Source: Oculina patagonica
Lineage: Eukaryota
Length of the DNA stretch: 64,000 nt
Reading direction: 5' to 3'
Assembly (NCBI RefSeq): GCF_052425735.1
Contig: NC_135760.1
Coordinates: 25,606,001-25,670,000 of the forward strand
Under the pieces are notes generated by a model, which saw nothing but the letters and a program-made list of their open reading frames with translations, was not told the DNA's origin and did not search any database. This document shows, piece after piece, positions 33,420 to 58,819 of the stretch. Within the stretch, counting starts at the first letter, position 1, and each line of letters begins with the position of its first letter. Both the position numbers and the translations under genes were made by a program.

Positions 33420-33858
33420 TACTAGTTATGCAGCACTTTCTAGTGGTATACCGTGGAATATCCCACGAATCACTAGCCTACGTGGCAGGCGTAAAAAGGG
33501 GAGGGAAAGGTAGACCTGTCCGTTTTTTCCCTCTCTCTCTCTCTTCTTTTCCAACTCCCCCTCCCTTCCCTTTCGACGCCTGCTACGCAGGCTAACGAGT
33601 CACTTGCATTTTCGCGGTATACACACAAGCCTCGAGTGTGTATACGAAGAAAATACAAGTGACAAGTGGGATATTCCATTGTATACCGCGAGAAACTGTT
33701 GTGTAACTATTTTATACCATGCCATAGAAAATATGCTGACTAAATTTCGCCGGGACAAAAAGTCGCAGTGCATGATGGAAAGGTTGAGTTGAATACCGTC
33801 GAATATACAACGGCTTTTCTGTACTCTGATTGGCTCTATTTTTTATGGCATGGTATAA
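33420..33858. mobile_element. MITE-like insertion containing a nested 121-bp TAG...CTA MITE (33474-33594, 9-bp TSD ACGA(A/G)TCAC)
   Basis: Absent from the homologous site at ~39424. The inner TIRs and TSD are seen directly. Confidence 0.7.
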
Positions 33859-34088: not shown

Positions 34089-34821
34089 TCACTTAAGAGG
34101 AGACATCAGGAATTTGAACAGGTGCCAGCCTGCTGAACCAATCTTCTTCGAGGAGCCCAACCAGGCATCACGTCCATGAGTTGGGGGTGATCGCTTAAAG
34201 AACTTGCCATCGAAGACGCCATACAAGTCACCATCCGCCATGAAGAAAAGCTTCTGAAAACGGTTCCAACCAGTCGTGCCAATGAGCGTGGATGATCCGA
34301 GCCAGTTGTCATTCCCAGCTGTGGGAGGGCTTCTTTTATGAAACTTGCCGTTTTTAAAGACGCCGTACAAGATTCCCTCTGGATCGAAAAAAAGAAATTT
34401 AAAGAGAGACCATCCACGCGATCCTACCAGTGTGGCAGATCCAATCCAGTTGTCACTACCGTATGCTGGCGGGAGCCTCTTGTAAAACTTGTCGTTGTAA
34501 ACGCCATAGAGCATTCCTTCAGGATCAAAGAAAAGGAACTGGAAGCCATTCCATCCAGACGTTCCGACAATCGTGGCTTTGGCGACCCAATCCGCAGCCG
34601 AAGAGCCATCGGGGGGAGGTCCTTTGTAGAACTTGCCATTCAGCAGCACTCCATATAAGGTACCATCTGGGTGGAAGAACAGAAACTTGAAGTCGTCCCA
34701 ACCTTTTGACCCTAGGACTGTGGCTGATCCAATCCAGTTGTCGCTGGCATACTTGGGAGGAGTTCTCGCGTAAAGTTTACCACCAAAAACTCCAAACAAC
34801 AGATTCTCGCCAACTGAGGAG
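34089..34821 (-). CDS. Tachylectin-2-like lectin B, main coding exon, open (~243 codons); no ATG at the exon start, so an upstream exon is needed
   Basis: Five regular ~47-aa tachylectin repeats. Acceptor TTCTTTCAG at 34830-34822. Confidence 0.85.
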
Positions 34822-35019
34822 CTGAAAGAAACAATTCAAGCAGGAAATATTACATATGAAAACTAATTGACCACCACTGTACTGATATTATTAAAAATTT
34901 GGAAGAATGGGGACTACTTTCTTCTTAACCAGATTTCGGTAAATCACTAGATGAATCTAAATTTCGAAATTAATTAAAGAAATAATTTAAAAAGGCTAAA
35001 AAGTTATTAAAGTTATTCA

Positions 35020-35440: not shown

Positions 35441-36177
35441 ACAATAATAATAATGAAGCGCCAATCCGTAAAGATGTTCAGTTTGTTTATGAACCGTTTA
35501 CTGATTCATTCAATCTTTCAGTGTGGTACCTACCAGGTAATAGTTCCAAAAACACTCACCAAAATGCACAATTGAAACATGATGCTCATGATTAAACTGA
35601 AAAAAATAAACATACAACATCAGTTACATCTCAGTGCTGACAAAAAATAGCATGCTAATAGAGTGAATTCGTGTAACCCGTTTTTTAAATGCTAATGAGC
35701 CGCAAAATATTCCAATGTTTGAGTACAATAAAACAATACACGAATGGTCAGAAAACCTTAAAGAAATCAGTTTAATTGTTTTACAGAAAATAATCAAGAA
35801 GTGCTTTTTCCTTCTTTGAACAGTTTCAACATGTTCAACTCCCTTTGCTATAAACCTATAGCGAAATAAAACGGACGTTGGTTCAAAACACACAGAATTT
35901 AATATTTTCTCGTTGTTGTTTTTCAGAAGACGGCAAACAAATTTGCCAAGAAAACGTGCACAGCTATTTTCCTGCTCATTAAACCTTTTGATTGTATAAT
36001 AAAATTGAACGCTAAGAAATTTGAACGACGTTTCGACCTTTCGACGGTCATTTTCAAGTTAGGTGTTTGAATAAAATATAGTAAAAGCGCTAAAATATGT
36101 ACATACAAACAATAGACAATAAGAATAAAAAGGCTAAAAATGGCTAAAAAAATAACTTTGTGAAAATGGCATGCATA

Positions 36178-38904: not shown

Positions 38905-39638
38905 CACGCNNNNNNNNNNNNNNNNNNNNNNNNNNNNNNNNNNNNNNNNNNNNNNNNNNNNNNNNNNNNNNNNNNNNNNNNNNNNNNNNNNNNNNNNNNN
39001 NNNNNNNNNNNNNNNNNNNNNNNNNNNNNNNNNNNNNNNNNNNNNNNNNNNNNNNNNNNNNNNNNNNNNNNNNNNNNNNNNNNNNNNNNNNNNNNNNNNN
39101 NNNNNNNNNNNNNNNNNNNNNNNNNNNNNNNNNNNNNNNNNNNNNNNNNNNNNNNNNNNNNNNNNNNNNNNNNNNNNNNNNNNNNNNNNNNNNNNNNNNN
39201 NNNNNNNNNNNNNNNNNNNNNNNNNNNNNNNNNNNNNNNNNNNNNNNNNNNNNNNNNNNNNNNNNNNNNNNNNNNNNNNNNNNNNNNNNNNNNNNNNNNN
39301 NNNNNNNNNNNNNNNNNNNNNNNNNNNNNNNNNNNNNNNNNNNNNNNNNNNNNNNNNNNNNNNNNNNNNNNNNNNNNNNNNNNNNNNNNNNNNNNNNNNN
39401 NNNNNNNNNGTTGTACTAAATACAAGGCGGGGTTCCACTGTATGTGTCAGAACTGTATGTTGATTATCAGTAAAGAAAGAACTCAAAATTGTTCGTCATC
39501 ACCCTTTTATTCCTCACTATAACAACAGTAATAGAACACCCTTATAGCCTTATCATTACAGTTAAGCTTAACAGTCCACAATTTCATCCAATCTGTGTTC
39601 CTATCTGCGGACTGCATTGTTGCTGCGACACTTGGCTC

Positions 39639-40750
39639 TCACTTAAGAGCAGACATCAGGAATTTGAACAGGTGCCAGCCTGCTGAACCAATCTTCTTCG
39701 AGGAGCCCAACCAGTCATCCCTTTCATGAGTTGGGGAAGATCGCTTAAAGAACTTGCCATCGAAGACGCCATACAAATCACCATCCGCCATGAAGAAAAG
39801 CTTATGAAAACGGTTCCAACCAGTCGCGCCAATGAGCGTGGATGATCCGAGCCAGTTATCATTCCCAGCTGTGGGAGGGCTTCTTTTATGAAACTTGCCG
39901 TTTTTAAAGACGCCGTATAAGATTCCCTCTGGATCGAAGAAAAGGAATTTGAAGAAAGACCATCCATGCGTTCCCACCAGTGTGGCAGTTCCAATCCAGT
40001 TGTCACTACCGTATGCTGGCGGGAGCCTCTTGTAAAACTTGTCGTTGTAAACGCCATAGAGCATTCCTTCAGGATCAAAGAAAAGGAACTGGAAGCCATT
40101 CCATCCAGTATAAGTATAATCCTCTTCGCGCCTAGGAGGCACATAAGGCTGAGACCAGAGATTTCCATTGCTCCCTTTCCATGGCTACCTTCTCAAGTTC
40201 TTTCCACGTCTTCCCTGCTGTTTTCATTTCTGCCTCGATCGTCCTCCTCCAAGTCTCCCGTGGACGTCCTTTCTTCCTTCTTCCACTATCCGGTGTCCAT
40301 CTTAATGCAGTTCGTGTTATGCTATCTCGGCCTTTCCTGATGACATGCCCTAGCCACCTCCATCTTCTTTGCTTTATTACCATGGCGATGTCCCGTTGTC
40401 CTGTCCTTTGATAGAGTTCCTTGTTTGTGATCTTCTGGGGCCAGTATATCCTGCATATCTTTCTCAGGCATGAAGTGTGGAAACCTGACGTTCCGACAAT
40501 CGTGGCTTTGGCGACCCAATCCGCAGCCGAAGAGCCATCGGGGGGAGGTCCTTTGTAGAACTTGCCATTCAGCAGCACTCCATGTAAGGTACCATCTGGG
40601 TGGAAGAACAGAAACTTGAAGTCGTCCCAACCTTTTGACCCTAGGACTGTGGCTGATCCAATCCAGTTGTCGCTGGCATACTTGGGAGGAGTTCTCGCGT
40701 AAAGTTTACCACCAAAAACTCCAAACAACAGATTCTCGCCAACTGAGGAG
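39639..40750 (-). pseudogene. Tachylectin-2-like lectin B, copy disrupted by a LINE insertion
   Basis: Colinear with 34089-34821 except for a 379-bp insert at 40108-40486. Confidence 0.9.
40108..40486 (-). mobile_element. 5'-truncated RTE-clade LINE (ORF C-terminus, short 3' UTR, (TTATAC)2 tail)
   Basis: CLRKICRIYW...RRWRWLGHVIR...GRPRETWRR...QWKSLVSALCAS is typical of RTE ORF ends. No TSD longer than 1 bp. Confidence 0.85.
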
Positions 40751-40813
40751 CTGAAAGAAACAATTCAAGCAGGAAATATTACATATGAAAACTAATTGAC
40801 CTCCACTGTACTG

Positions 40814-41176
40814 TATGGTGGCCTAGGCGTGCCACAGAAGAATTGTACATTATTTTAAGACTTCTTTAATGATTTTCTAATTTGATTCAATGTGTTGCAT
40901 ATTTTATTGTCTATTTATTATTATTTTTGTTATATATTGTTTGCTTTTCAGTTTTTGATATAGTTTTGTTTTGTAAATTATTGTTATTCGATTTCAGTAT
41001 TAATTGCTTTTCAGTTTTTGATATAGTTTTGTTTTGTAAATTATTGTTATTCAATTTCAGTTTCAATTCAATTTCAGTTCAAAACGAGTTTTATTTTGTT
41101 TTATTTCGTCTCAGTTTTGTTTTTCAAAAGAAAACTGAACTGCATCATGGCCTATGAGTGCCATAGCCCACAATGC
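40814..41176 (+). repeat. 363-bp terminal inverted repeat (also 43477-43839 and 46137-46499; inverted at 52455-52817 and 56479-56841)
   Basis: One left/right mismatch noticed. Contains two ~63-bp tandem units and an inner imperfect palindrome (41142-41176). Confidence 0.95.
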
Positions 41177-41227
41177 CAAGCACGCATGTTGAGGTGCTTC
41201 CCCAAAAGGCATCGCGCGTAATTCAAA

Positions 41228-43476
41228 ATGGCTGAGCGTATTAGGAACGCCGAATGGCAGAATGACGATGCTTTAAGACAAGATCTGGAGAAGTATGTTC
41301 GCAGGAATCTGAGAAGAAATGAAATTCTAGATTTTGTAAGTTTAGACTATCCAATGTATGCGTGGAGTTTAAGAAGCCTTTGTAGAAGGCTCCAGTATTT
41401 TGACCTCAAGTACACAGACTATGGAGTAGAAGTTAGCGATGTGCAAGAAGCTGTTAAAAAGGAGTTGCAAGGTCCTGGTATGCTTTTAGGTTACCGAGCA
41501 ATGCAACAGAAGGTGCGTGAGGTTCATGGTCTAAATGTTCCTCGTGATTTGGTGTACGCGGCGATGGGAGAAGCTGACCCGGATGGACTCAAATCAAGAG
41601 GCGGAGTGGGGCAATCAAATAGACCACAACGATTGAATGCATTTGTCACAGGTGTAAGTTGCCATTAGTTTCATATCGTGCAACCTATTATTTACAGGTG
41701 GGGGGGGGGGGGGGGGGGCTATGAAAAATTGGGGGTGGGCCACTATTTTTCCACATTACAAAAAAGGTGGGTCTGGAAAATTAACGACCGCATTAGGGGT
41801 GGGTCATGGTCAAAATAAATTATTCATTTAACAGCATCTATAACAGTGCAAACATATTCAATCAGGATGCCTAAAGCAGCATTTCTGAGGTGCTAAAAAT
41901 CTAAATTTTCCTGGGGAACATCCTCCAAACCCCCTACTTTGTCATGTACAATCATTATTAACTCAAAACCACCACCTATTGTTATCCCTTTAAACTGCAG
42001 AGACTACATCTACAATGGTTAAAATAATTCCACCTGAATGCCTAAAATAGTATTTAGGAGTTTCTAGAAAATCTAAATTTTCCCGGGGACCATCCAGGCC
42101 CCGAACCCCTCTACTTTGCATGGGCTCCTGACTTTGCTTTGTACAGACATCAAAACCACCAACTATTAGTGTCCTTTTAAACTGCAGAGAATATATCTGC
42201 AACAAAAATTGTACCATAATGCCCTAAAATTCATTTCAAGGACTCTAACACTGTTATGATCCAAACTTTGATCTCGAAATGTTTCTGGAGATTCTGACTA
42301 AAATGATAAGCCAGTGTTTCCTGTAAACATATCTACATTTATTTACTGATGTTGGTTGGTGGGTGGGCCACTAGGTTTTTCTGTGTCACTCCAGGGGTGG
42401 GCCACCCCTATTTTGTTCAAATAATTCATAGCCCACCTCCCCACCCTGTACTTTTTGACTGGTCCCTAAGAGACCAAAAAATTAAAGGAGCAATTTTCTT
42501 AACATATTTGCTGTGTGCTTTTTTCAATAATAACGACCTGACTGTACTATGTCATGTGATGGACATGATAAACTTTGTGGGTACCAAAAGTCAATGTTTC
42601 CTTTGTGTATTTACGGAGGATTAGATACCTACAGTGGAAGAGTTAATTTCCTGCGAGTGTGGACCTCAAACAACAACCCCAAGGTTATAGGAAGGTTCTA
42701 TTTTGAATATCTGTTTGAATCTAGAGGTAAGGGGCAACATTGTAGAAGGCAAATCATGTCTCAGTTAAACTTGTCAACCCTCTAAAAATTCAATTTGGTG
42801 TCATGATGTTTATCAGAAACCTGGAATATTAGTTTCAAATAACAGTGAACAAAATGCAAACACATAAAATAGTATTCTATAGATCTATATTAATCCTTTG
42901 TGTGCTTGAAAGTTGAATGAAAATTTTACCAGTTATAAGAATGTGTTTTTTAGAACATGTCATTTACTGCCAGTGAGTTCCATGTAGTGAAAAACTGTGA
43001 ACAAGGTCTTGAAAATGCTTCCCCCAGGTGCAAAAATTATGCTAGTGAACTAATCTGTCCCCCTCCCCCTAAGCAGTGTCGCGTTTTGACAGTGGAATGC
43101 ATATTAGTACACAAACAAATCTTTACCTTTGTTTTTCAACATTGTTTGGGTTGGGGGGGGAGAGGTTCGCCCAATTTGCAGGAATAATTGAGTTTAGAGT
43201 AATACTACATTGTTAATGTTCTTTTATTTACTGTTTATGTACATTTTCCTGCAGTTCTGCCCGAGACATTACGGATAGACAGGGGTACCGAAACTGATGT
43301 TATGGCAACAATCCATTGCTTTCTTAGAGAAAAACAAGGCGATTTAGAGAAATCTACAGATGCGGTACTATATGGGCCCTCAACCCAAAATAAAATAGAA
43401 AGGTGGTGGCGGGAGCTTTTGGAAAGAATGGAGAGATATTTTAAAGATCAGCTAAAATCATTAGTAGAATGTGGTG
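41228..43476 (+). pseudogene. Transposase exons 1-3 of the outer copy, interrupted in exon 3; the remainder resumes at 52824-53506
   Basis: ...LVECG reads into the next TIR (VWWPRR...stop). The matching EYDASDQTDR sequence resumes after 52817. Confidence 0.85.
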
Positions 43477-46136
43477 TATGGTGGCCTAGGCGTGCCACAG
43501 AAGAATTGTACATTATTTTAAGACTTCTTTAATGATTTTCTAATTTGATTCAATGTGTTGCATATTTTATTGTCTATTTATTATTATTTTTGTTATATAT
43601 TGTTTGCTTTTCAGTTTTTGATATAGTTTTGTTTTGTAAATTATTGTTATTCGATTTCAGTATTAATTGCTTTTCAGTTTTTGATATAGTTTTGTTTTGT
43701 AAATTATTGTTATTCAATTTCAGTTTCAATTCAATTTCAGTTCAAAACGAGTTTTATTTTGTTTTATTTCGTCTCAGTTTTGTTTTTCAAAAGAAAACTG
43801 AACTGCATCATGGCCTATGAGTGCCATAGCCCACAATGCCAAGCACGCATGTTGAGGTGCTTCCCCAAAAGGCATCGCGCGTAATTCAAAATGGCTGAGC
43901 GTATTAGGAACGCCGAATGGCAGAATGACGATGCTTTAAGACAAGATCTGGAGAAGTATGTTCGCAGGAATCTGAGAAGAAATGAAATTCTAGATTTTGT
44001 AAGTTTAGACTATCCAATGTATGCGTGGAGTTTAAGAAGCCTTTGTAGAAGGCTCCAGTATTTTGACCTCAAGTACACAGACTATGGAGTAGAAGTTAGC
44101 GATGTGCAAGAAGCTGTTAAAAAGGAGTTGCAAGGTCCTGGTATGCTTTTAGGTTACCGAGCAATGCAACAGAAGGTGCGTGAGGTTCATGGTCTAAATG
44201 TTCCTCGTGATTTGGTGTACGCGGCGATGGGAGAAGCTGACCCGGATGGACTCAAATCAAGAGGCGGAGTGGGGCAATCAAATAGACCACAACGATTGAA
44301 TGCATTTGTCACAGGTGTAAGTTGCCATTAGTTTCATATCGTGCAACCTATTATTTACAGGTGGGGGGGGGGGGGGGGCTATGAAAAATTGGGGGTGGGC
44401 CACTATTTTTCCACATTACAAAAAAGGTGGGTCTGGAAAATTAACGACCGCATTAGGGGTGGGTCATGGTCAAAATAAATTATTCATTTAACAGCATCTA
44501 TAACAGTGCAAACATATTCAATCAGGATGCCTAAAGCAGCATTTCTGAGGTGCTAAAAATCTAAATTTTCCTGGGGAACATCCTCCAAACCCCCTACTTT
44601 GTCATGTACAATCATTATTAACTCAAAACCACCACCTATTGTTATCCCTTTAAACTGCAGAGACTACATCTACAATGGTTAAAATAATTCCACCTGAATG
44701 CCTAAAATAGTATTTAGGAGTTTCTAGAAAATCTAAATTTTCCCGGGGACCATCCAGGCCCCGAACCCCTCTACTTTGCATGGGCTCCTGACTTTGCTTT
44801 GTACAGACATCAAAACCACCAACTATTAGTGTCCTTTTAAACTGCAGAGAATATATCTGCAACAAAAATTGTACCATAATGCCCTAAAATTCATTTCAAG
44901 GACTCTAACACTGTTATGATCCAAACTTTGATCTCGAAATGTTTCTGGAGATTCTGACTAAAATGATAAGCCAGTGTTTCCTGTAAACATATCTACATTT
45001 ATTTACTGATGTTGGTTGGTGGGTGGGCCACTAGGTTTTTCTGTGTCACTCCAGGGGTGGGCCACCCCTATTTTGTTCAAATAATTCATAGCCCACCTCC
45101 CCACCCTGTACTTTTTGACTGGTCCCTAAGAGACCAAAAAATTAAAGGAGCAATTTTCTTAACATATTTGCTGTGTGCTTTTTTCAATAATAACGACCTG
45201 ACTGTACTATGTCATGTGATGGACATGATAAACTTTGTGGGTACCAAAAGTCAATGTTTCCTTTGTGTATTTACGGAGGATTAGATACCTACAGTGGAAG
45301 AGTTAATTTCCTGCGAGTGTGGACCTCAAACAACAACCCCAAGGTTATAGGAAGGTTCTATTTTGAATATCTGTTTGAATCTAGAGGTAAGGGGCAACAT
45401 TGTAGAAGGCAAATCATGTCTCAGTTAAACTTGTCAACCCTCTAAAAATTCAATTTGGTGTCATGATGTTTATCAGAAACCTGGAATATTAGTTTCAAAT
45501 AACAGTGAACAAAATGCAAACACATAAAATAGTATTCTATAGATCTATATTAATCCTTTGTGTGCTTGAAAGTTGAATGAAAATTTTACCAGTTATAAGA
45601 ATGTGTTTTTTAGAACATGTCATTTACTGCCAGTGAGTTCCATGTAGTGAAAAACTGTGAACAAGGTCTTGAAAATGCTTCCCCCAGGTGCAAAAATTAT
45701 GCTAGTGAACTAATCTGTCCCCCTCCCCCTAAGCAGTGTCGCGTTTTGACAGTGGAATGCATATTAGTACACAAACAAATCTTTACCTTTGTTTTTCAAC
45801 ATTGTTTGGGTTGGGGGGGGAGAGGTTCGCCCAATTTGCAGGAATAATTGAGTTTAGAGTAATACTACATTGTTAATGTTCTTTTATTTACTGTTTATGT
45901 ACATTTTCCTGCAGTTCTGCCCGAGACATTACGGATAGACAGGGGTACCGAAACTGATGTTATGGCAACAATCCATTGCTTTCTTAGAGAAAAACAAGGC
46001 GATTTAGAGAAATCTACAGATGCGGTACTATATGGGCCCTCAACCCAAAATAAAATAGAAAGGTGGTGGCGGGAGCTTTTGGAAAGAATGGAGAGATATT
46101 TTAAAGATCAGCTAAAATCATTAGTAGAATGTGGTG
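43477..46136 (+). mobile_element. Extra left half of the element (TIR plus transposase exons 1-3) with no matching right half
   Basis: 2,660-bp near-perfect tandem repeat of 40814-43476, ending in the same GTGGTG. Confidence 0.85.
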
Positions 46137-46550
46137 TATGGTGGCCTAGGCGTGCCACAGAAGAATTGTACATTATTTTAAGACTTCTTTAATGATTTTC
46201 TAATTTGATTCAATGTGTTGCATATTTTATTGTCTATTTATTATTATTTTTGTTATATATTGTTTGCTTTTCAGTTTTTGATATAGTTTTGTTTTGTAAA
46301 TTATTGTTATTCGATTTCAGTATTAATTGCTTTTCAGTTTTTGATATAGTTTTGTTTTGTAAATTATTGTTATTCAATTTCAGTTTCAATTCAATTTCAG
46401 TTCAAAACGAGTTTTATTTTGTTTTATTTCGTCTCAGTTTTGTTTTTCAAAAGAAAACTGAACTGCATCATGGCCTATGAGTGCCATAGCCCACAATGCC
46501 AAGCACGCATGTTGAGGTGCTTCCCCAAAAGGCATCGCGCGTAATTCAAA

Positions 46551-49481
46551 ATGGCTGAGCGTATTAGGAACGCCGAATGGCAGAATGACGATGCTTTAAG
46601 ACAAGATCTGGAGAAGTATGTTCGCAGGAATCTGAGAAGAAATGAAATTCTAGATTTTGTAAGTTTAGACTATCCAATGTATGCGTGGAGTTTAAGAAGC
46701 CTTTGTAGAAGGCTCCAGTATTTTGACCTCAAGTACACAGACTATGGAGTAGAAGTTAGCGATGTGCAAGAAGCTGTTAAAAAGGAGTTGCAAGGTCCTG
46801 GTATGCTTTTAGGTTACCGAGCAATGCAACAGAAGGTGCGTGAGGTTCATGGTCTAAATGTTCCTCGTGATTTGGTGTACGCGGCGATGGGAGAAGCTGA
46901 CCCGGATGGACTCAAATCAAGAGGCGGAGTGGGGCAATCAAATAGACCACAACGATTGAATGCATTTGTCACAGGTGTAAGTTGCCATTAGTTTCATATC
47001 GTGCAACCTATTATTTACAGGTGGGGGGGGGGGGGGGCTATGAAAAATTGGGGGTGGGCCACTATTTTTCCACATTACAAAAAAGGTGGGTCTGGAAAAT
47101 TAACGACCGCATTAGGGGTGGGTCATGGTCAAAATAAATTATTCATTTAACAGCATCTATAACAGTGCAAACATATTCAATCAGGATGCCTAAAGCAGCA
47201 TTTCTGAGGTGCTAAAAATCTAAATTTTCCTGGGGAACATCCTCCAAACCCCCTACTTTGTCATGTACAATCATTATTAACTCAAAACCACCACCTATTG
47301 TTATCCCTTTAAACTGCAGAGACTACATCTACAATGGTTAAAATAATTCCACCTGAATGCCTAAAATAGTATTTAGGAGTTTCTAGAAAATCTAAATTTT
47401 CCCGGGGACCATCCAGGCCCCGAACCCCTCTACTTTGCATGGGCTCCTGACTTTGCTTTGTACAGACATCAAAACCACCAACTATTAGTGTCCTTTTAAA
47501 CTGCAGAGAATATATCTGCAACAAAAATTGTACCATAATGCCCTAAAATTCATTTCAAGGACTCTAACACTGTTATGATCCAAACTTTGATCTCGAAATG
47601 TTTCTGGAGATTCTGACTAAAATGATAAGCCAGTGTTTCCTGTAAACATATCTACATTTATTTACTGATGTTGGTTGGTGGGTGGGCCACTAGGTTTTTC
47701 TGTGTCACTCCAGGGGTGGGCCACCCCTATTTTGTTCAAATAATTCATAGCCCACCTCCCCACCCTGTACTTTTTGACTGGTCCCTAAGAGACCAAAAAA
47801 TTAAAGGAGCAATTTTCTTAACATATTTGCTGTGTGCTTTTTTCAATAATAACGACCTGACTGTACTATGTCATGTGATGGACATGATAAACTTTGTGGG
47901 TACCAAAAGTCAATGTTTCCTTTGTGTATTTACGGAGGATTAGATACCTACAGTGGAAGAGTTAATTTCCTGCGAGTGTGGACCTCAAACAACAACCCCA
48001 AGGTTATAGGAAGGTTCTATTTTGAATATCTGTTTGAATCTAGAGGTAAGGGGCAACATTGTAGAAGGCAAATCATGTCTCAGTTAAACTTGTCAACCCT
48101 CTAAAAATTCAATTTGGTGTCATGATGTTTATCAGAAACCTGGAATATTAGTTTCAAATAACAGTGAACAAAATGCAAACACATAAAATAGTATTCTATA
48201 GATCTATATTAATCCTTTGTGTGCTTGAAAGTTGAATGAAAATTTTACCAGTTATAAGAATGTGTTTTTTAGAACATGTCATTTACTGCCAGTGAGTTCC
48301 ATGTAGTGAAAAACTGTGAACAAGGTCTTGAAAATGCTTCCCCCAGGTGCAAAAATTATGCTAGTGAACTAATCTGTCCCCCTCCCCCTAAGCAGTGTCG
48401 TGTTTTGACAGTGGAATGCATATTAGTACACAAACAAATCTTTACCTTTGTTTTTCAACATTGTTTGGGTTGGGGGGGGGGGAGAGGTTCGCCCAATTTG
48501 CAGGAATAATTGAGTTTAGAGTAATACTACATTGTTAATGTTCTTTTATTTACTGTTTATGTACATTTTCCTGCAGTTCTGCCCGAGACATTACGGATAG
48601 ACAGGGGTACCGAAACTGATGTTATGGCAACAATCCATTGCTTTCTTAGAGAAAAACAAGGCGATTTAGAGAAATCTACAGATGCGGTACTATATGGGCC
48701 CTCAACCCAAAATAAAATAGAAAGGTGGTGGCGGGAGCTTTTGGAAAGAATGGAGAGATATTTTAAAGATCAGCTAAAATCATTAGTAGAATGTGGTGAA
48801 TATGATGCTAGTGATCAAACAGACAGGTATGTACATGTATGTATTTCATAGTGAACTTACTTACAATTCTAACATGGTACTAGAGAGAATTTCATAAAGG
48901 TGTGAAAACCTAGTAACCAATTAGAAGTAAGCTTCCATGCCAAATAGGAAATAGTAATGCATGAAAGGATTCCAGAGGTTTCACTAGCCTTTGAAACAAG
49001 CAGTCTTTGGTACCTTCAAATTCTTGAAACTGAGGTTTCCTTTTGATTTTGGGAGTACTGGAGGCCAAACTTGTATTTTTTGTAACTGTTTGTATACTTT
49101 ACATCTACCCTTAGGGACCTTCTAGCATATGTCTATATCCCTGTCATTCAAAAGGAGCTCGATGTTTTCAGAAAGTGTGTGTGGAATAACCACAGGAGCA
49201 GGAAGCAGAGGGGAAAAGAACTTCCATCAGGAGTGCCTGAGCATATTTACCACTTCCCTGAACAATATGGTGGACAAAAATGTGGCATCAAGGTCACAGA
49301 AGAACAGTTACTTGAAGTTGCTGAGTTTTCTAAAGTTCTTGAGGAAAATGATGATTATCTAAAGCCATCCGTCCGACAAGAGTGTCAGCGACATGTACCA
49401 GATGCCAATGACATAGATCCAGAAGATGCAAAGGTTGCTTACCTTTTTCTACGATCTCATATCAATAAAAATGCATTTTAA
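46551..49481 (+). CDS. DDE integrase-family (IS3/IS481-like) transposase, ~410 aa, 4 exons (46551-46976, ~47853-48045, 48577-48826, 49115-49481)
   Basis: Motifs GPGMLLGYRAM, SCDGHDKL (D1), LRIDRGTE (D2), STQNKIERWW (E) and WNNHR. Introns 2 and 3 are canonical and in phase. The intron 1 acceptor lacks AG. Confidence 0.85.
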
Positions 49482-50029
49482 AACTGCTATATGAATTGGT
49501 CAAAATGTCCATAATTTTAAATTGGTTTGATAATATGATGTAATCCCACATCAGTTGGAGAGTTCATAGAAGGTCTGTGTTAAATTAGCCTGTATAGCTG
49601 CCCTAAAGGGGAGGGGAAAAGGGGTATTTTCCTCCCTCCCCCTCCCCTATGAGCTTGCTATGATGGCTAGTGCTAAATATACAGGTAAACGTTCAAAGTA
49701 CCTACTGGTAACTTATATGACCTCATGCAGTGACAGGGAATTGTTAAGACATCAATGGAAATAGTGTATAAGGAAATAAACAATGCTGGAATTAGTAAAT
49801 GTTATATTAAAACCCCATCATATACACTGACAATTATATTCAGTAATTCTTGAAGTTGCTGAACTATCCCATGTCCTTGAAGACTGATGATTTTTTGAAT
49901 CCAAGTGAACAAAGAGAGTGTCAGCAACATTTGCCAGATATCAATAACATACCTCTTTTTAAAATCGCATGTCAATAAACATGTATTTTGAAATTGCTGT
50001 CTTGAGTTAAAGATAAGGCCCAGTAACAA

Positions 50030-50205
50030 CAGTGGAACCCCGATATAACGATCTTCGATATAACGATATTCCCGATATAACGATGAATATGTTATGTCCC
50101 GGCAATAGTAAAATGTATGGGATGGAACCCCGATATAACGATTTCTCGATATAACGATATAATTTTACTGCCCCCTTGGCATATCGTTATATCGGGGTTC
50201 CACTG
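50030..50205. mobile_element. 176-bp pogo/Tigger-like MITE (CAGTGGAACCCCGATATAACG TIRs) carried inside the transposon; second copy at 54055-54230
   Basis: Perfect >20-bp TIRs, internal CGATATAACGA repeats and AA flanks. Confidence 0.85.
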
Positions 50206-51149
50206 AATTAACCTATTGTAGCTGATCACTTCCAACCAAGCTAGCACTCAGGTGTATGGTACCTGTGGCAGGTTATATAATTGTTTTCATGGTTACTAAT
50301 CCATTTTCACATCAAATTCTGTTGAAGTTGAGGAAGATTTTCATAACAAAGACTCTAGAACTTGCTTGAACTCTACTTTTGTCATCTTAGGTTGTTCAAC
50401 AGACCAGCATTTCATGACTTGCACATTGTATAAGAATTGTCTGTTGTTTTTTTTTTTTTTTTTGGCATCGAAAAATAACCCAACTGCTCAGTAATAGTTC
50501 TTTTTCAGGAAACATTGCTTATTTGTAAACCTACATCCTCATGCATGACAAGGATGAAGATATGGTAAAAAAAATCAGATCATTCAATCAGGCTTCTTTC
50601 ATAACTCCTATATAACCGTTTTTATTACATGCAATATACTTACAAAAGTGGCTTATTCAAAATTATCTGGATGATGTTTAGTGTCCTTTAACCAAGCTGT
50701 AGGCTAACATTATCTTGACAGTTTTTGACATGTCTTATAACTGGCCATGCAATCAGGTATATTGCTTGTTAAATTATCATAACTATAAACTATAAACTCT
50801 AACATGTAACGCATTAACAAGCTATAACAATTAAAAGCTGAGATTTGATTTTTACTACAAGTCTACAAGTCCTTCCTTTCTTTTAACTTGTAGGTACATC
50901 AAAAAAATTCCAGCCTGTGTATATATATACCTAACAGTTCTTTTATACGTAACAATTTAAATCTCGAAAGGAAAACAATAACTCAACACCAAATAGAAAA
51001 ACTTATGGCCTTTTCCGAAAAATAGGCAATGTGTGAAAACAATATTTTCTTTGCATGCACAGTTCACTTACAAAGCACATTAAAAAATACTTGTATAAAA
51101 GATAGACAGTTCGCAACAGCATAATCAGTACTTCAGTTACTTACTGTTT

Positions 51150-52367
51150 TCACAATTTGTCTAGTTTAAGTAGATCACAGAACTTGTTGCATATGTGCTC
51201 GGTCTTGAATTTTTCTATGGCCTGTGATGAGAGGTTTCCGCAACAGAAAAAGATGGATTGGTCTGCATTGTCCAGAAGTTCAGAAGTTGCTATTTCCGGA
51301 TCAAATAGGGTATAATCGACCCCTTGAATGTCGACGACCATGAGCTGCTTTCCTGATTTACAATAGGTATAATGCGAAAATGTCTCCGCCTTGCAGCTTA
51401 CCTCGCCACCGTCGCCACACACTTCTCCAGTGTTATTCACATGCTTCTCAAACGCGCCCTCGATATAGGGCTCTACTGTAACACATTGGCCATAAAGCTT
51501 TCCAAAGTAAACTTTGGTGTAACGAAGGGTGGACCCATACTCAACTGGGGCTTCTGCAGCAAGCGCTAGCCGTAATGCAAAGTTCCTTGCAAGCGCGTTC
51601 ATCTGGACCACTTTTCTGGTGTGGGTTTCCATCGAAGTAAATAACCTTTCGATCTCTTGTACTTGATCTTCTTTAAACTTTTTGAGCACGTATTTGCCAG
51701 GACTGAGCTCAGAAAGAGCGGTAGCATGGTATGCATCTCTAAACGCGCCACTGGCAAATTTTTGCTTCGACAAAGAAAACTTTGCTTCGCAGGGCTGACG
51801 CCATGATTTCTCGCCCAGGTCAAACTCTTCGAGTTGCACCGAAACAATGTCTGCTGTCGGTTGGATAAGCTTGCCGACCTTCAGCATGGCACTAAGGGGT
51901 ACAGACGCCGCAGCTTTCGTTGCCATCGGCCGGGCAGGCTTTTCTGGAGTTAGTTGTGATTTTGTTTCCCTTACCGACTCGAGCTCGGACATTTCGCTTT
52001 CACCATCACTTTTCTCGATGAAACGCACGTGGATAGCCTTCCAGTTAGTGATCTGGCTACTTTCTGTCCACGAGGGTCCCCTCTCGCCGGCTAAAATATC
52101 ACATTCCATGTGCTCAGCTTTAAAGAAGCGCTTACACGCCTCCTTTATGTTTGAAATCGTTGGTTCACATCCAAGGGGAACCATGGTTAGCGCGCCGATC
52201 CTGGCATATTTTTGATATCGTCCCTCAACATTCGAAGAGAGCCGTTGCACTGTTATGTAATCCATATCGCCACTGCCTGTCGATTCGTCCTTCCCCATTC
52301 TCTTTTTAGCGATTTTCGCCTTAAATGCACGGAATTCGTCGTTGGTTCGCCTTCCTCTTTTTGACAT
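51150..52367 (-). CDS. Intronless alpha-kinase (eEF2K/MHCK/TRPM7/ALPK catalytic family), ~405 aa, transposon cargo
   Basis: FASGAFRDAY, YVLKKF, VEPYIEGAFEKHVNNTG, FSHYTY, VVDIQGV, LFDPEI, GNLS and the HICNKFC zinc motif. ATG in AAAATG context at 52367. Confidence 0.92.
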   Translation of the reverse strand: MSKRGRRTNDEFRAFKAKIAKKRMGKDESTGSGDMDYITVQRLSSNVEGRYQKYARIGALTMVPLGCEPTISNIKEACKRFFKAEHMECDILAGERGPSWTESSQITNWKAIHVRFIEKSDGESEMSELESVRETKSQLTPEKPARPMATKAAASVPLSAMLKVGKLIQPTADIVSVQLEEFDLGEKSWRQPCEAKFSLSKQKFASGAFRDAYHATALSELSPGKYVLKKFKEDQVQEIERLFTSMETHTRKVVQMNALARNFALRLALAAEAPVEYGSTLRYTKVYFGKLYGQCVTVEPYIEGAFEKHVNNTGEVCGDGGEVSCKAETFSHYTYCKSGKQLMVVDIQGVDYTLFDPEIATSELLDNADQSIFFCCGNLSSQAIEKFKTEHICNKFCDLLKLDKL

Positions 52368-55173
52368 TTTGCCGGTCAGAACCACGTGCGATTGTAAACA
52401 GAACCAAGCTTCCAGGTTCTTTCAAGCCGATGGCGTGACAAGAATGCAACCGTTGCATTGTGGGCTATGGCACTCATAGGCCATGATGCAGTTCAGTTTT
52501 CTTTTGAAAAACAAAACTGAGACGAAATAAAACAAAATAAAACTCGTTTTGAACTGAAATTGAATTGAAACTGAAATTGAATAACAATAATTTACAAAAC
52601 AAAACTATATCAAAAACTGAAAAGCAGTTAATACTGAAATCGAATAACAATAATTTACAAAACAAAACTATATCAAAAACTGAAAAGCAAACAATATATA
52701 ACAAAAATAATAATAAATAGACAATAAAATATGCAACACATTGAATCAAATTAGAAAATCATTAAAGAAGTCTTAAAATAATGTACAATTCTTCTGTGGC
52801 ACGCCTAGGCCACCATAGTGGTGAATATGATGCTAGTGATCAAACAGACAGGTATGTACATGTATGTATTTCATAGTGAACTTACTTACAATTCTAACAT
52901 GGTACTAGAGAGAATTTCATAAAGGTGTGAAAACCTAGTAACCAATTAGAAGTAAGCTTCCATGCCAAATAGGAAATAGTAATGCATGAAAGGATTCCAG
53001 AGGTTTCACTAGCCTTTGAAACAAGCAGTCTTTGGTACCTTCAAATTCTTGAAACTGAGGTTTCCTTTTGATTTTGGGAGTACTGGAGGCCAAACTTGTA
53101 TTTTTTGTAACTGTTTGTATACTTTACATCTACCCTTAGGGACCTTCTAGCATATGTCTATATCCCTGTCATTCAAAAGGAGCTCGATGTTTTCAGAAAG
53201 TGTGTGTGGAATAACCACAGGAGCAGGAAGCAGAGGGGAAAAGAACTTCCATCAGGAGTGCCTGAGCATATTTACCACTTCCCTGAACAATATGGTGGAC
53301 AAAAATGTGGCATCAAGGTCACAGAAGAACAGTTACTTGAAGTTGCTGAGTTTTCTAAAGTTCTTGAGGAAAATGATGATTATCTAAAGCCATCCGTCCG
53401 ACAAGAGTGTCAGCGACATGTACCAGATGCCAATGACATAGATCCAGAAGATGCAAAGGTTGCTTACCTTTTTCTACGATCTCATATCAATAAAAATGCA
53501 TTTTAAAACTGCTATATGAATTGGTCAAAATGTCCATAATTTTAAATTGGTTTGATAATATGATGTAATCCCACATCAGTTGGAGAGTTCATAGAAGGTC
53601 TGTGTTAAATTAGCCTGTATAGCTGCCCTAAAGGGGAGGGGAAAAGGGGTATTTTCCTCCCTCCCCCTCCCCTATGAGCTTGCTATGATGGCTAGTGCTA
53701 AATATACAGGTAAACGTTCAAAGTACCTACTGGTAACTTATATGACCTCATGCAGTGACAGGGAATTGTTAAGACATCAATGGAAATAGTGTATAAGGAA
53801 ATAAACAATGCTGGAATTAGTAAATGTTATATTAAAACCCCATCATATACACTGACAATTATATTCAGTAATTCTTGAAGTTGCTGAACTATCCCATGTC
53901 CTTGAAGACTGATGATTTTTTGAATCCAAGTGAACAAAGAGAGTGTCAGCAACATTTGCCAGATATCAATAACATACCTCTTTTTAAAATCGCATGTCAA
54001 TAAACATGTATTTTGAAATTGCTGTCTTGAGTTAAAGATAAGGCCCAGTAACAACAGTGGAACCCCGATATAACGATCTTCGATATAACGATATTCCCGA
54101 TATAACGATGAATATGTTATGTCCCGGCAATAGTAAAATGTATGGGATGGAACCCCGATATAACGATTTCTCGATATAACGATATAATTTTACTGCCCCC
54201 TTGGCATATCGTTATATCGGGGTTCCACTGAATTAACCTATTGTAGCTGATCACTTCCAACCAAGCTAGCACTCAGGTGTATGGTACCTGTGGCAGGTTA
54301 TATAATTGTTTTCATGGTTACTAATCCATTTTCACATCAAATTCTGTTGAAGTTGAGGAAGATTTTCATAACAAAGACTCTAGAACTTGCTTGAACTCTA
54401 CTTTTGTCATCTTAGGTTGTTCAACAGACCAGCATTTCATGACTTGCACATTGTATAAGAATTGTCTGTTGTTTTTTTTTTTTTTTGGCATCGAAAAATA
54501 ACCCAACTGCTCAGTAATAGTTCTTTTTCAGGAAACATTGCTTATTTGTAAACCTACATCCTCATGCATGACAAGGATGAAGATATGGTAAAAAAAATCA
54601 GATCATTCAATCAGGCTTCTTTCATAACTCCTATATAACCGTTTTTATTACATGCAATATACTTACAAAAGTGGCTTATTCAAAATTATCTGGATGATGT
54701 TTAGTGTCCTTTAACCAAGCTGTAGGCTAACATTATCTTGACAGTTTTTGACATGTCTTATAACTGGCCATGCAATCAGGTATATTGCTTGTTAAATTAT
54801 CATAACTATAAACTATAAACTCTAACATGTAACGCATTAACAAGCTATAACAATTAAAAGCTGAGATTTGATTTTTACTACAAGTCTACAAGTCCTTCCT
54901 TTCTTTTAACTTGTAGGTACATCAAAAAAAATTCCAGCCTGTGTATATATATACCTAACAGTTCTTTTATACGTAACAATTTAAATCTCGAAAGGAAAAC
55001 AATAACTCAACACCAAATAGAAAAACTTATGGCCTTTTCCGAAAAATAGGCAATGTGTGAAAACAATATTTTCTTTGCATGCACAGTTCACTTACAAAGC
55101 ACATTAAAAAATACTTGTATAAAAGATAGACAGTTCGCAACAGCATAATCAGTACTTCAGTTACTTACTGTTT

Positions 55174-56391
55174 TCACAATTTGTCTAGTTTAAGTAGATC
55201 ACAGAACTTGTTGCATATGTGCTCGGTCTTGAATTTTTCTATGGCCTGTGATGAGAGGTTTCCGCAACAGAAAAAGATGGATTGGTCTGCATTGTCCAGA
55301 AGTTCAGAAGTTGCTATTTCCGGATCAAATAGGGTATAATCGACCCCTTGAATGTCGACGACCATGAGCTGCTTTCCTGATTTACAATAGGTATAATGCG
55401 AAAATGTCTCCGCCTTGCAGCTTACCTCGCCACCGTCGCCACACACTTCTCCAGTGTTATTCACATGCTTCTCAAACGCGCCCTCGATATAGGGCTCTAC
55501 TGTAACACATTGGCCATAAAGCTTTCCAAAGTAAACTTTGGTGTAACGAAGGGTGGACCCATACTCAACTGGGGCTTCTGCAGCAAGCGCTAGCCGTAAT
55601 GCAAAGTTCCTTGCAAGCGCGTTCATCTGGACCACTTTTCTGGTGTGGGTTTCCATCGAAGTAAATAACCTTTCGATCTCTTGTACTTGATCTTCTTTAA
55701 ACTTTTTGAGCACGTATTTGCCAGGACTGAGCTCAGAAAGAGCGGTAGCATGGTATGCATCTCTAAACGCGCCACTGGCAAATTTTTGCTTCGACAAAGA
55801 AAACTTTGCTTCGCAGGGCTGACGCCATGATTTCTCGCCCAGGTCAAACTCTTCGAGTTGCACCGAAACAATGTCTGCTGTCGGTTGGATAAGCTTGCCG
55901 ACCTTCAGCATGGCACTAAGGGGTACAGACGCCGCAGCTTTCGTTGCCATCGGCCGGGCAGGCTTTTCTGGAGTTAGTTGTGATTTTGTTTCCCTTACCG
56001 ACTCGAGCTCGGACATTTCGCTTTCACCATCACTTTTCTCGATGAAACGCACGTGGATAGCCTTCCAGTTAGTGATCTGGCTACTTTCTGTCCACGAGGG
56101 TCCCCTCTCGCCGGCTAAAATATCACATTCCATGTGCTCAGCTTTAAAGAAGCGCTTACACGCCTCCTTTATGTTTGAAATCGTTGGTTCACATCCAAGG
56201 GGAACCATGGTTAGCGCGCCGATCCTGGCATATTTTTGATATCGTCCCTCAACATTCGAAGAGAGCCGTTGCACTGTTATGTAATCCATATCGCCACTGC
56301 CTGTCGATTCGTCCTTCCCCATTCTCTTTTTAGCGATTTTCGCCTTAAATGCACGGAATTCGTCGTTGGTTCGCCTTCCTCTTTTTGACAT
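55174..56391 (-). CDS. Alpha-kinase, second copy with identical protein (outer element)
   Basis: ORF-track translation is identical to 51150-52385. Confidence 0.92.
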   Translation of the reverse strand: MSKRGRRTNDEFRAFKAKIAKKRMGKDESTGSGDMDYITVQRLSSNVEGRYQKYARIGALTMVPLGCEPTISNIKEACKRFFKAEHMECDILAGERGPSWTESSQITNWKAIHVRFIEKSDGESEMSELESVRETKSQLTPEKPARPMATKAAASVPLSAMLKVGKLIQPTADIVSVQLEEFDLGEKSWRQPCEAKFSLSKQKFASGAFRDAYHATALSELSPGKYVLKKFKEDQVQEIERLFTSMETHTRKVVQMNALARNFALRLALAAEAPVEYGSTLRYTKVYFGKLYGQCVTVEPYIEGAFEKHVNNTGEVCGDGGEVSCKAETFSHYTYCKSGKQLMVVDIQGVDYTLFDPEIATSELLDNADQSIFFCCGNLSSQAIEKFKTEHICNKFCDLLKLDKL

Positions 56392-58819
56392 TTTGCCGGT
56401 CAGAACCACGTGCGATTGTAAACAGAACCAAGCTTCCAGGTTCTTTCAAGCCGATGGCGTGACAAGAATGCAACCGTTGCATTGTGGGCTATGGCACTCA
56501 TAGGCCATGATGCAGTTCAGTTTTCTTTTGAAAAACAAAACTGAGACGAAATAAAACAAAATAAAACTCGTTTTGAACTGAAATTGAATTGAAACTGAAA
56601 TTGAATAACAATAATTTACAAAACAAAACTATATCAAAAACTGAAAAGCAGTTAATACTGAAATCGAATAACAATAATTTACAAAACAAAACTATATCAA
56701 AAACTGAAAAGCAAACAATATATAACAAAAATAATAATAAATAGACAATAAAATATGCAACACATTGAATCAAATTAGAAAATCATTAAAGAAGTCTTAA
56801 AATAATGTACAATTCTTCTGTGGCACGCCTAGGCCACCATAGTACTGATATCATTAAAAATTTGGAAGAATGGGGACTACTTTCTTCTTAACCACATTTC
56901 GGTAAATCACTAGATGAATCTAAATTTCGAAATTAATTAAAGAAATAATTTAAAAAGGCTAAAAAGTTATTAAAGTTATTCAAATGAAAACGTTTTCGAT
57001 TCTAGTTTATCATCAGTGATAAATGATCATCTGTATTCAACTTGGTTTTGTGTTGTTATAATTGCCGAGGGGAACAGCTTGGCGATAAAACAGTGCACCT
57101 GTTTGTTTAATGTTGGTTTCTCGCAAGCAATCAACACGCTTTCCATTATTTTGCGTCAAAAAGTCTTTTTTTTCGTGAACGCGATGTTCCATGTGTATCG
57201 ATGATCAGTTTTTTGCGAGGTGGCAGGCTGGCTCCGAGTTATGGGTCTTATTCTCGTGCTCTGCTTTTCGCACTGCGAAATTACGTTTTGTTTCGCCAAT
57301 ACAAGTTTTGCCACATTTGCAAACGGCACGATAGATTACATTTGATTTGTGCCCGTTTTTGTCTTTGAGGTTAAAAAAACTTTTGATCTTTCGGGTTTGC
57401 CATAGAATAATAAACATGAAGCGTCAATCCGTAAAGATGTTCAGTTTGTTTATGAACCGTTTACTGATTCATTCAATCTTTCAGTGTGGTACTTACCAGG
57501 TAATAGTTCCAAAAACACTCAACAAAATGCACAATTGATCCATGAAACATGATGCTCATGATTAAACTGAAAAAAATAAACATACAACATCAGTTACATC
57601 TCAGTGCTGACAAAAAAAAGCATGCTAATAGAGTGAATTCGTGTAACCCGTTTTTTAAAATGCTAATGAGCCGCAAAATATTCCAATGTTTGAGTACAAT
57701 AAAACAATACACGAATGGTCAGAAAACCTTAAAGAAATCAGTTTAATTGTTTTACAGAAAATAAACAAGAAGTGCTTTTTCCTTCTTTGAACAATTTCAA
57801 CATGTTCAACTCCCTTTGCTATAAACCTATAGCGAAATAAAACGGACGTTGGTTCAAAACACACAGAATTTAATATTTTCGCGTTGTTGTTTTTCAGAAG
57901 ACGGCAAACAAATTTGCCAAGAAAACGTGCAAAGCTATTTTCCTGCTCATTAAACCTTTTGATTGTATAATAAAATTGAACGCTAAGAAATTTGAACGAC
58001 GTTTCGACCTTTCGACGGTCATTTTCAAGTTAGGTGTTTGAATAAAATATAGTAAAAGCGCTAAAATATGTACATACAAACAATAGACAATAAGAATAAA
58101 AAGGCTAAAAATGGCTAAAAAAATAACTTTGTGAAAATGGCATGCATAGTTGTAAAAGATATAATTAAGAACGTAAAGCAAGCGAATAAGACGACGAGAA
58201 TAAGAACATTAAAATACCTAAAAATATCTAAACACCCCTTTCACGAGCACCAAGGATCCAGCACTTTTTCTAAACAAATCATTTGTTGTGTATAAATTTA
58301 ACTGTTCCGGCTGCAATGCAATTACAATGAAAATAACAGAAAGAACTTTGTTTGAAAGAACTGAACACTAGAACAAAGCCGTGACAAAGACAGCGCTGTA
58401 TTCTGCCAACTGAACGACTTTCCGAACTTCCAACACGTCAAAGGTTTATTAGAGATGGAACACCTTAGGCACATAAAGCCAAGAAAATTGTTTACGTCTG
58501 TCTGGCCGTACGTGTTTAGCCAATTAAAGCACCCGTTCCAGTATTTGAACAAAGCGGCAGAGGCTGCGGATGATTTTGATAAACGTTTTCCGGCTGTGTT
58601 TTTTCGGAGGAGTGTAGACAAAAAACAAAAAGGCACAAGCGTGGGCTCGAGTATCGAAAGTTGCCGAGTGAAAGGAGTCGAGAACAAAGCTTTCTAACTA
58701 GTAAACATCGTGTTCTTATGCCTGAGTTGATGCTTATGTTGACGTTCGTTTTCACTTGGCAAATACCATTTTAATATGCTTGCGTTTGTGCTTGCGTCGC
58801 TAGTAAAAGCAAGGCTTAA

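Follow-up and report, generated by a model that had tools for sequence, protein, structure and literature searches.

An IS3EU/GingerRoot transposon nested in a copy of itself in the genome assembly of the stony coral Oculina patagonica, and the likely origin of an additional left half

IS3EU/GingerRoot elements are DNA transposons with an integrase-type DDE transposase and long terminal inverted repeats (TIRs), for which TA..TA termini (TAYGG..CCRTA in the characterized fungal families) and 6-bp target duplications are the criteria (PMC10045372; PMC12730594). For the fungal families that carry TET, an alpha-kinase gene on the strand opposite to the transposase gene has been described, which is a recurrent but not a defining feature (PMC12730594). 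Nested transposons are known from several systems. Nested Ds elements of maize, in which a cut-and-paste element lies in its own copy, are rare, and nested Ds as well as "double Ds" have been tied to chromosome breakage, whereby the extra termini can pair abnormally (PMC3260210). In Drosophila mutagenesis screens, self-insertions of P{lacW} occurred, and multimers arise in this way (PMC4744444). Tandem dimers of transposable elements can furthermore expand by unequal exchange, an example being a Drosophila line with a hobo array (McGurk and Barbash 2018, PMC5932611). Here, we analyzed a window of 64,000 nucleotides from the stony coral Oculina patagonica (NCBI RefSeq assembly GCF_052425735.1, contig NC_135760.1, positions 25,606,001 to 25,670,000 of the forward strand), which harbors an IS3EU element that has very likely been hit by a copy of itself.

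A scan for repeats, together with a reading of the junction sequences, reproduced, for the assembly, the layout that an earlier sequence-only reading of the window had described (Table 1). An outer copy flanked by GTACTG is split within exon 3 of its transposase gene by a complete inner copy of the same orientation, whereby GTGGTG is duplicated, and an extra left half lies between the left half of the outer copy and the complete copy. In total there are three left halves (L1 and L2 as well as L3, with which the complete copy begins) and two right halves (R1 of the complete copy and R2 of the outer copy). L1, L2, and L3 all terminate at the same base in GTGGTG, 30 bp short of the exon 3 donor, and the nest junctions read GTGGTG/TATGGTGG and CCACCATA/GTGGTGAATATG (slashes mark boundaries here and below). 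The 374-bp TIRs are inverted, 98% complementary, and contain 63-bp subrepeats. In self-BLAST, identity amounted to 99.7–99.85% among the left halves (2.66 kb) and to 99.93% between the right halves (4.03 kb), which is far above chance. The single-base difference among the left halves is a C/C/T site at 43082/45742/48401 (L1/L2/L3), and two G-runs differ in length. Direct reading confirmed the C/C/T site and the second G-run (G8/G8/G11) as they had been claimed, whereas the first G-run (G19/G16/G15 at 41700/44363/47023) had been overlooked. Between R1 and R2, a T-run and an A-run vary in length, and there are no other differences. The exon 3 frame of L1 as well as of L2 reads 18 codons into the TIR of the next unit and then stops (in L1 at 43530).

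The origin of the inner copy can be deduced from changes that it shares with the outer one. A single substitution in 6,676 bp (0.015%) separates inner and outer copy, compared to 0.19–0.37% between each of them and the copies on chromosome piece C4, and nine substitutions are common to both but absent from all three C4 copies. Sites diagnostic against the C4 copies include element positions 546, 1716–1717, 2210, 2731, and 3513. Both also carry a 178-bp miniature inverted-repeat transposable element (MITE), as well as a 6-bp in-frame insertion in the alpha-kinase gene (51562–51567 and the equivalent in R2). The latter is private to the nested lineage, in which the kinase is 405 aa long; the kinases of the C4 copies and of the closest relatives have 403 aa. 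The MITE family comprises at least 1,436 candidate genomic copies, with scored matches being 97–99% identical; the element-plus-MITE version was found only at the nest locus in the search of the own genome. Since the private markers are common to inner and outer copies and the MITE version is unique to the locus, the inner copy would derive from the resident copy itself, its sister, or its homologue and not from another locus. The same-orientation self-insertion that the sequence-only reading had proposed is thus in our view very likely, and the low divergence between the two copies compared to other loci supports its suggestion that the element has been active very recently.

Table 1. Coordinates of the nest and its parts within the 64,000-nucleotide window
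Feature	Position	Strand	Remarks
Outer target-site duplication, left copy, GTACTG	40808..40813	.	empty-site paralogue has a single GTACTG
Left half 1 (L1) of the outer copy	40814..43476	+	left TIR 40814-41187, transposase exons 1-2, most of exon 3; last bases GTGGTG
Extra left half (L2)	43477..46136	+	0 substitutions vs L1, 1 vs L3; G16 and G8 runs; last bases GTGGTG, same base
Complete inner IS3EU copy (L3 + R1)	46137..52817	+	6,681 bp; L3 46137-48798; TIRs 46137-46510 and 52444-52817
Inner-copy transposase gene, four exons, rva_4 integrase core	46551..49481 (46551-46976, 47853-48045, 48577-48826, 49115-49481)	+	collinear PF24764 matches
Destroyed intron-1 acceptor	47851..47853; L1 42532-42534; L2 45192-45194	+	AAC vs AG/G elsewhere
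Uninterrupted GTGGTG target, inner copy exon 3	48793..48798	+	codons E-C-G-E, ~30 residues past the catalytic E in IERWW
178-bp MITE inside the element	50028..50205; second copy (R2) 54053..54230	.	absent from the three C4 copies
Inner-copy alpha-kinase open reading frame, intronless	51150..52385	-	PF02816, E = 1e-34; convergent with the transposase gene
Right half 2 (R2) of the outer copy	52818..56841	+	starts with the second GTGGTG; rest of exon 3, exon 4, MITE, kinase, right TIR 56468-56841
Second alpha-kinase open reading frame (R2)	55174..56409	-	identical to the first
Outer target-site duplication, right copy, GTACTG	56842..56847	.	

Judged by its termini, target duplications, putative rva_4 transposase, and convergent alpha-kinase, the element is a member of the IS3EU/GingerRoot DNA transposons. 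Its ends, TATGGTGGCC...GGCCACCATA, are of the TATGG..CCATA form, in agreement with TAYGG..CCRTA. The transposase exons were searched against Pfam singly and not as a joined model, whereby exons 2, 3, and 4 yielded collinear matches to PF24764 (rva_4) with E = 0.13, 8.6e-5, and 9.3e-4, which sum up to ~55 bits compared to a cut-off of 26. D, D, and E motifs are readable in the exons, and there was no match to the NCBIfam IS3/IS481 models among them. By tblastn, each Oculina exon aligns in order to an annotated 413-aa PF24764 gene of Exaiptasia diaphana; the splice phases were also worked out. This gene is part of a related 7,128-bp element (LJWW01000404.1, L005:7548-14675) with 353-bp perfect TIRs and the target duplication CATGAA, which has the same first 13 terminal bases as the Oculina element and encodes a 63% identical kinase convergent with the PF24764 gene. 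In the public annotation, the Exaiptasia kinase is called "TRPM6" and the transposase is entered as an ordinary gene. The pairing of kinase and transposase also occurs in a coral metagenome contig from ENA. Since the element shows the IS3EU termini and 6-bp duplications as well as the described opposite-strand alpha-kinase, the kinase is, by sequence, the regular second gene of IS3EU and not captured cargo. The doubled kinase dose that had been claimed for the nest holds only as a count of two identical open reading frames (ORFs) of this regular gene. Exact-protein look-ups with the 405-aa kinase, with the 76-aa ORF across the junction of two left halves, and with P0001 gave no match in records from which those of the own genome may be excluded, and a scan of JGI metagenomes with the 24-nt terminus gave 0 matches.

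Besides the nest, the Oculina genome contains three full-length copies on C4 and one 1.9-kb internal-deletion derivative on C6, and the four full-length loci are at least 99.6% identical in substitutions. The duplications at the C4 and C6 copies (GAGTAG, GACATG, CAGGTC, and CTGCAC) each comprise 6 perfect bp, as is the case at all seven target sites (six from Oculina and one from Exaiptasia). Neither GTnnTG nor any other obvious motif is present among these sites, so that the GTnnTG target motif suggested earlier on the basis of GTACTG and GTGGTG is refuted by the C4 and C6 sites and by CATGAA. Recurrent insertion at GTGGTG, which had also been considered, was not found either, as none of the other copies, including the three full-length ones on C4, is interrupted there. 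The C6 derivative (L004:501-2392; C6:27.70 Mb) has kept both ends and exon 1, and its first G-run has a length of ~33. A short imperfect microhomology (ACTGTA/ACTATA) lies where the deleted part is missing, which is what abortive gap repair after excision would be expected to leave. The copy at C4:31.48 Mb (L002) contains a 135-bp insertion after element position 3426, apparently a tandem duplication, and one additional 63-bp TIR subrepeat; therefore, other slippage-type length changes occur in the family. The MITE, with the termini CAGTGGAACCCCGATATAACGAT..., belongs to a very young, high-copy family of Oculina patagonica.

The nested lineage differs from all other copies in the first intron of the transposase gene, where AC instead of GG at 47852–47853 (42533–42534 in L1 and 45193–45194 in L2) destroys the splice acceptor. 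The change belongs to those that are shared by inner and outer copy and private to them. For the C4 and C6 copies, the acceptor reads ...CAATAATAG/GGACCTGAC, which is canonical and in phase with a strong donor at 46976 (GGT/GTAAGT), whereas all three left halves of the window read ...AATAA/CGACC, corresponding to AG>AA. The AG is kept in the four other Oculina copies and also in the Exaiptasia element (...CCTTAG/GGACCC at the homologous exon 2 start). In-frame stops are located immediately upstream of the lost acceptor, and use of the next in-phase AG (47908–47909) would delete a segment with the first catalytic Asp. The exons of the C4 copies are open and bordered by six canonical splice sites. 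Since AG>AA is present in all three left halves, the lineage was probably transposase-defective before nesting and mobilized in trans. The knock-out of a transposase that had been ascribed to the self-insertion is correct insofar as the outer gene is split, but it is moot, because this splitting probably disabled nothing that was still working.

The duplications on both sides of the insertions were compared with uninterrupted counterparts. A segment at 33855–36177 matches both flanks of the nest (39420–40816 and 56834–58148) and contains a single GTACTG at 34879–34884. Identity between flanks and segment is 98–99% beside the insertion site and 92.6% farther out, with an overall range of 92.6–98.8%. 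Since this empty-site paralogue carries one GTACTG, the outer duplication is real, and the same applies to the inner GTGGTG duplication, since the inner copy and three further copies in the genome have this site uninterrupted. The second copy of this local segmental duplication begins ~10 bp after a 500-N scaffold gap (38910–39409). It could also be that the empty-site segment represents the other haplotype, wrongly placed in tandem. However, identity goes down to 92.6% in part and the homology ends at 36177 and 58148 though both contigs continue; a paralogue is thus more likely. Contigs from the public runs X1, X15, and X16 with an empty site were considered as the empty allele of the nest site, but they match exactly to the paralogue at 34885 instead. 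Just upstream of the nest, at about 40109–40483, there is a ~375-bp insertion that is absent from the paralogue at 34558. For a 289-bp part of it, ~40 genomic matches with 87–100% identity were listed, and it resembles a short interspersed repeat whose arrival preceded the IS3EU insertion.

From these data the following history may be proposed. A low-copy, very young IS3EU/GingerRoot element would have inserted at GTACTG on chromosome piece C3, already carrying the MITE and the dinucleotide change at the intron-1 acceptor, whereby transposase from the intact C4 copies probably moved this defective copy in trans. A copy of the same element, presumably from the sister chromatid or the homologue, would then have entered GTGGTG in exon 3 in direct orientation. 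With the usual 6-bp duplication, this would yield L[LR]R, in which the left halves are perfect 2.66-kb tandem direct repeats. A single homology-driven event may have added the third unit to give L-L-[L-R]-R, for which unequal sister-chromatid exchange or a template switch in repair synthesis or replication are candidate routes. In the exchange model, the middle unit would start with L3 sequence at its 5' end and continue with L1 sequence toward its 3' end. The L1/L2 and L2/L3 junctions are identical, as expected of a unit copied by homology, and the mosaic of L2 is consistent with an L3/L1 recombinant, as its G16 run is nearer to the G15 of L3 than to the G19 of L1, whereas it has the C and the G8 of L1. 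G8 is derived, with all other copies having G11–13, and the T at the C/T site is a private derived change of L3. We consider it somewhat more probable than not that the third unit exists and is a product of homologous exchange, and we place moderate confidence in the full history of insertion, self-insertion, and homology-driven gain.

Several circumstances weigh against this reading. Apart from the one C/T site, the markers of the left halves are lengths of long homopolymers, in which long-read assemblies are prone to errors. The nest-bearing contig has its first base at 39410, right after the 500-N gap and 1.4 kb before L1, and contig ends are least reliable. Moreover, the nest junction did not appear in public de Bruijn contigs, which are also unsuited to exclude it. 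It might thus be that the self-insertion L[LR]R is real and that the third left half represents an assembly over-expansion of the two-unit tandem repeat, a serious rival which we regard as possible but somewhat doubtful. Apart from the gap near the contig end, it would account for the fact that L2 has 0 substitutions compared to L1 and differs from it by homopolymer lengths only, and a search of the own genome for haplotigs (with the flank, the TIR, and the MITE junction) revealed no second assembly of the nest locus that could serve as a cross-check. On the other hand, the three-unit array with its anchors is ~8 kb long and can be spanned by single long reads, and an assembly that separates near-identical nested copies of 6.7 kb has very probably been built from such reads. 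At the C/T site as well as at the second G-run, L2 is exactly like L1 and not a blend, and yet it differs from L1 at the first G-run.

The sequence-only reading had already preferred one self-insertion with a subsequent gain of a left unit by homology over two hits at one base, and our data support this as the more parsimonious solution. Two transposition hits could have led to L[L[LR]R]R with later loss of one right half, or a composite L-L-R "macro-transposon" could have entered GTGGTG. Both routes would yield exactly the observed junctions, and the two left and two right termini of the nest could pair in alternative ways. However, the same base must be struck twice, which is improbable because the seven target sites show no specificity, and the three other full copies are intact there. 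Two hits also require more events than one exchange, and the derived G8 common to L1 and L2 is better explained by copying of L1, so that we rate this solution as improbable. That the entire nest is an assembly chimera of dispersed copies appears even more remote. This would agree with the public data, for which four runs were compared as de Bruijn (Logan) contigs with positions 40500–46499. Contigs of the runs X1, X4, and X16 continue through GTGGTG straight into the uninterrupted element, none of the listed contigs of the four runs extends across 40813/40814, 43476/43477, or 46136/46137, and at the lineage-diagnostic sites only C4-type letters occur. But branches and variants in the minority are lost from such contig sets, and for none of the runs is an origin from the assembled colony known, so that they allow no inference on the nest or the unit number. 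Mis-joins also do not give terminus-exact junctions with a perfect 6-bp duplication of the length typical for the family, and both right halves bear markers that are absent from other genomic copies, so they were not borrowed from the C4 loci. The public contigs revealed in addition that the element family is present in several labelled organisms. At least one contig of run X16 joins the element terminus to a flank that matches no insertion site of the assembly, and one of run X15, with a loose end at 46131, departs from the element right at GTGGTG into unrelated sequence. This suggests insertion polymorphism or rearranged copies in relatives.

The nest might also tell something about the transposition mechanism. 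It is conceivable, albeit unlikely, that IS3EU elements, in analogy to the related bacterial IS3/IS481 elements, retain the donor and move by a copy-out, paste-in route, and that the nest is a footprint of this route in an animal. If this were true, landing in the still-resident donor would be a direct by-product, which would fit a single-locus lineage with a preserved donor. The data do not favor this route over post-replicative cut-and-paste from the sister chromatid, and the 1.9-kb derivative on C6 rather resembles a product of excision and abortive gap repair.

In comparison with the described IS3EU/GingerRoot families, the Oculina element has the same TA..TA termini, 6-bp duplications, and long TIRs, its transposase is probably of the integrase-type DDE kind as well, and its alpha-kinase gene has the opposite orientation as in the fungal TET-carrying families. 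It differs in its stony coral host, in the 374-bp TIRs with 63-bp subrepeats, and in the lost splice acceptor of the nested lineage. Double Ds is an inverted-orientation nest. In contrast, the direct orientation of the Oculina nest leads to tandem direct repeats that are prone to unequal exchange, and no breakage phenotype is known. As in the hobo-type dimers, direct repeats are adjacent with a target duplication at the junction, and the number of units is altered while the junctions are identical. However, those dimers consist of whole elements from double insertion at one site, whereas the repeated unit in Oculina is a left half that originates from self-insertion, with one extra unit. With P{lacW} the nest has in common that a mobilized copy strikes a resident copy, but there artificial constructs were studied experimentally, whereas here a natural element is deduced from one assembly.

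Self-insertion, nested elements, and expansion by unequal exchange have all been described before, so that the Oculina nest is not a new kind of event. It constitutes a clear natural case from a superfamily and a host that have been little studied and leaves the current understanding of transposons unchanged. For genome annotation it means that three truncated or defective 5' parts of a transposase gene and two kinase ORFs are not to be taken as host genes. The locus documents an IS3EU family that is currently or was very recently mobile in a stony coral, and it provides an example of a probably non-autonomous, splice-defective copy that would have been moved in trans. Furthermore, it illustrates that a same-orientation self-insertion immediately makes kilobase-sized tandem repeats of changeable number, which is the first step of a known route from a transposon to a tandem array.

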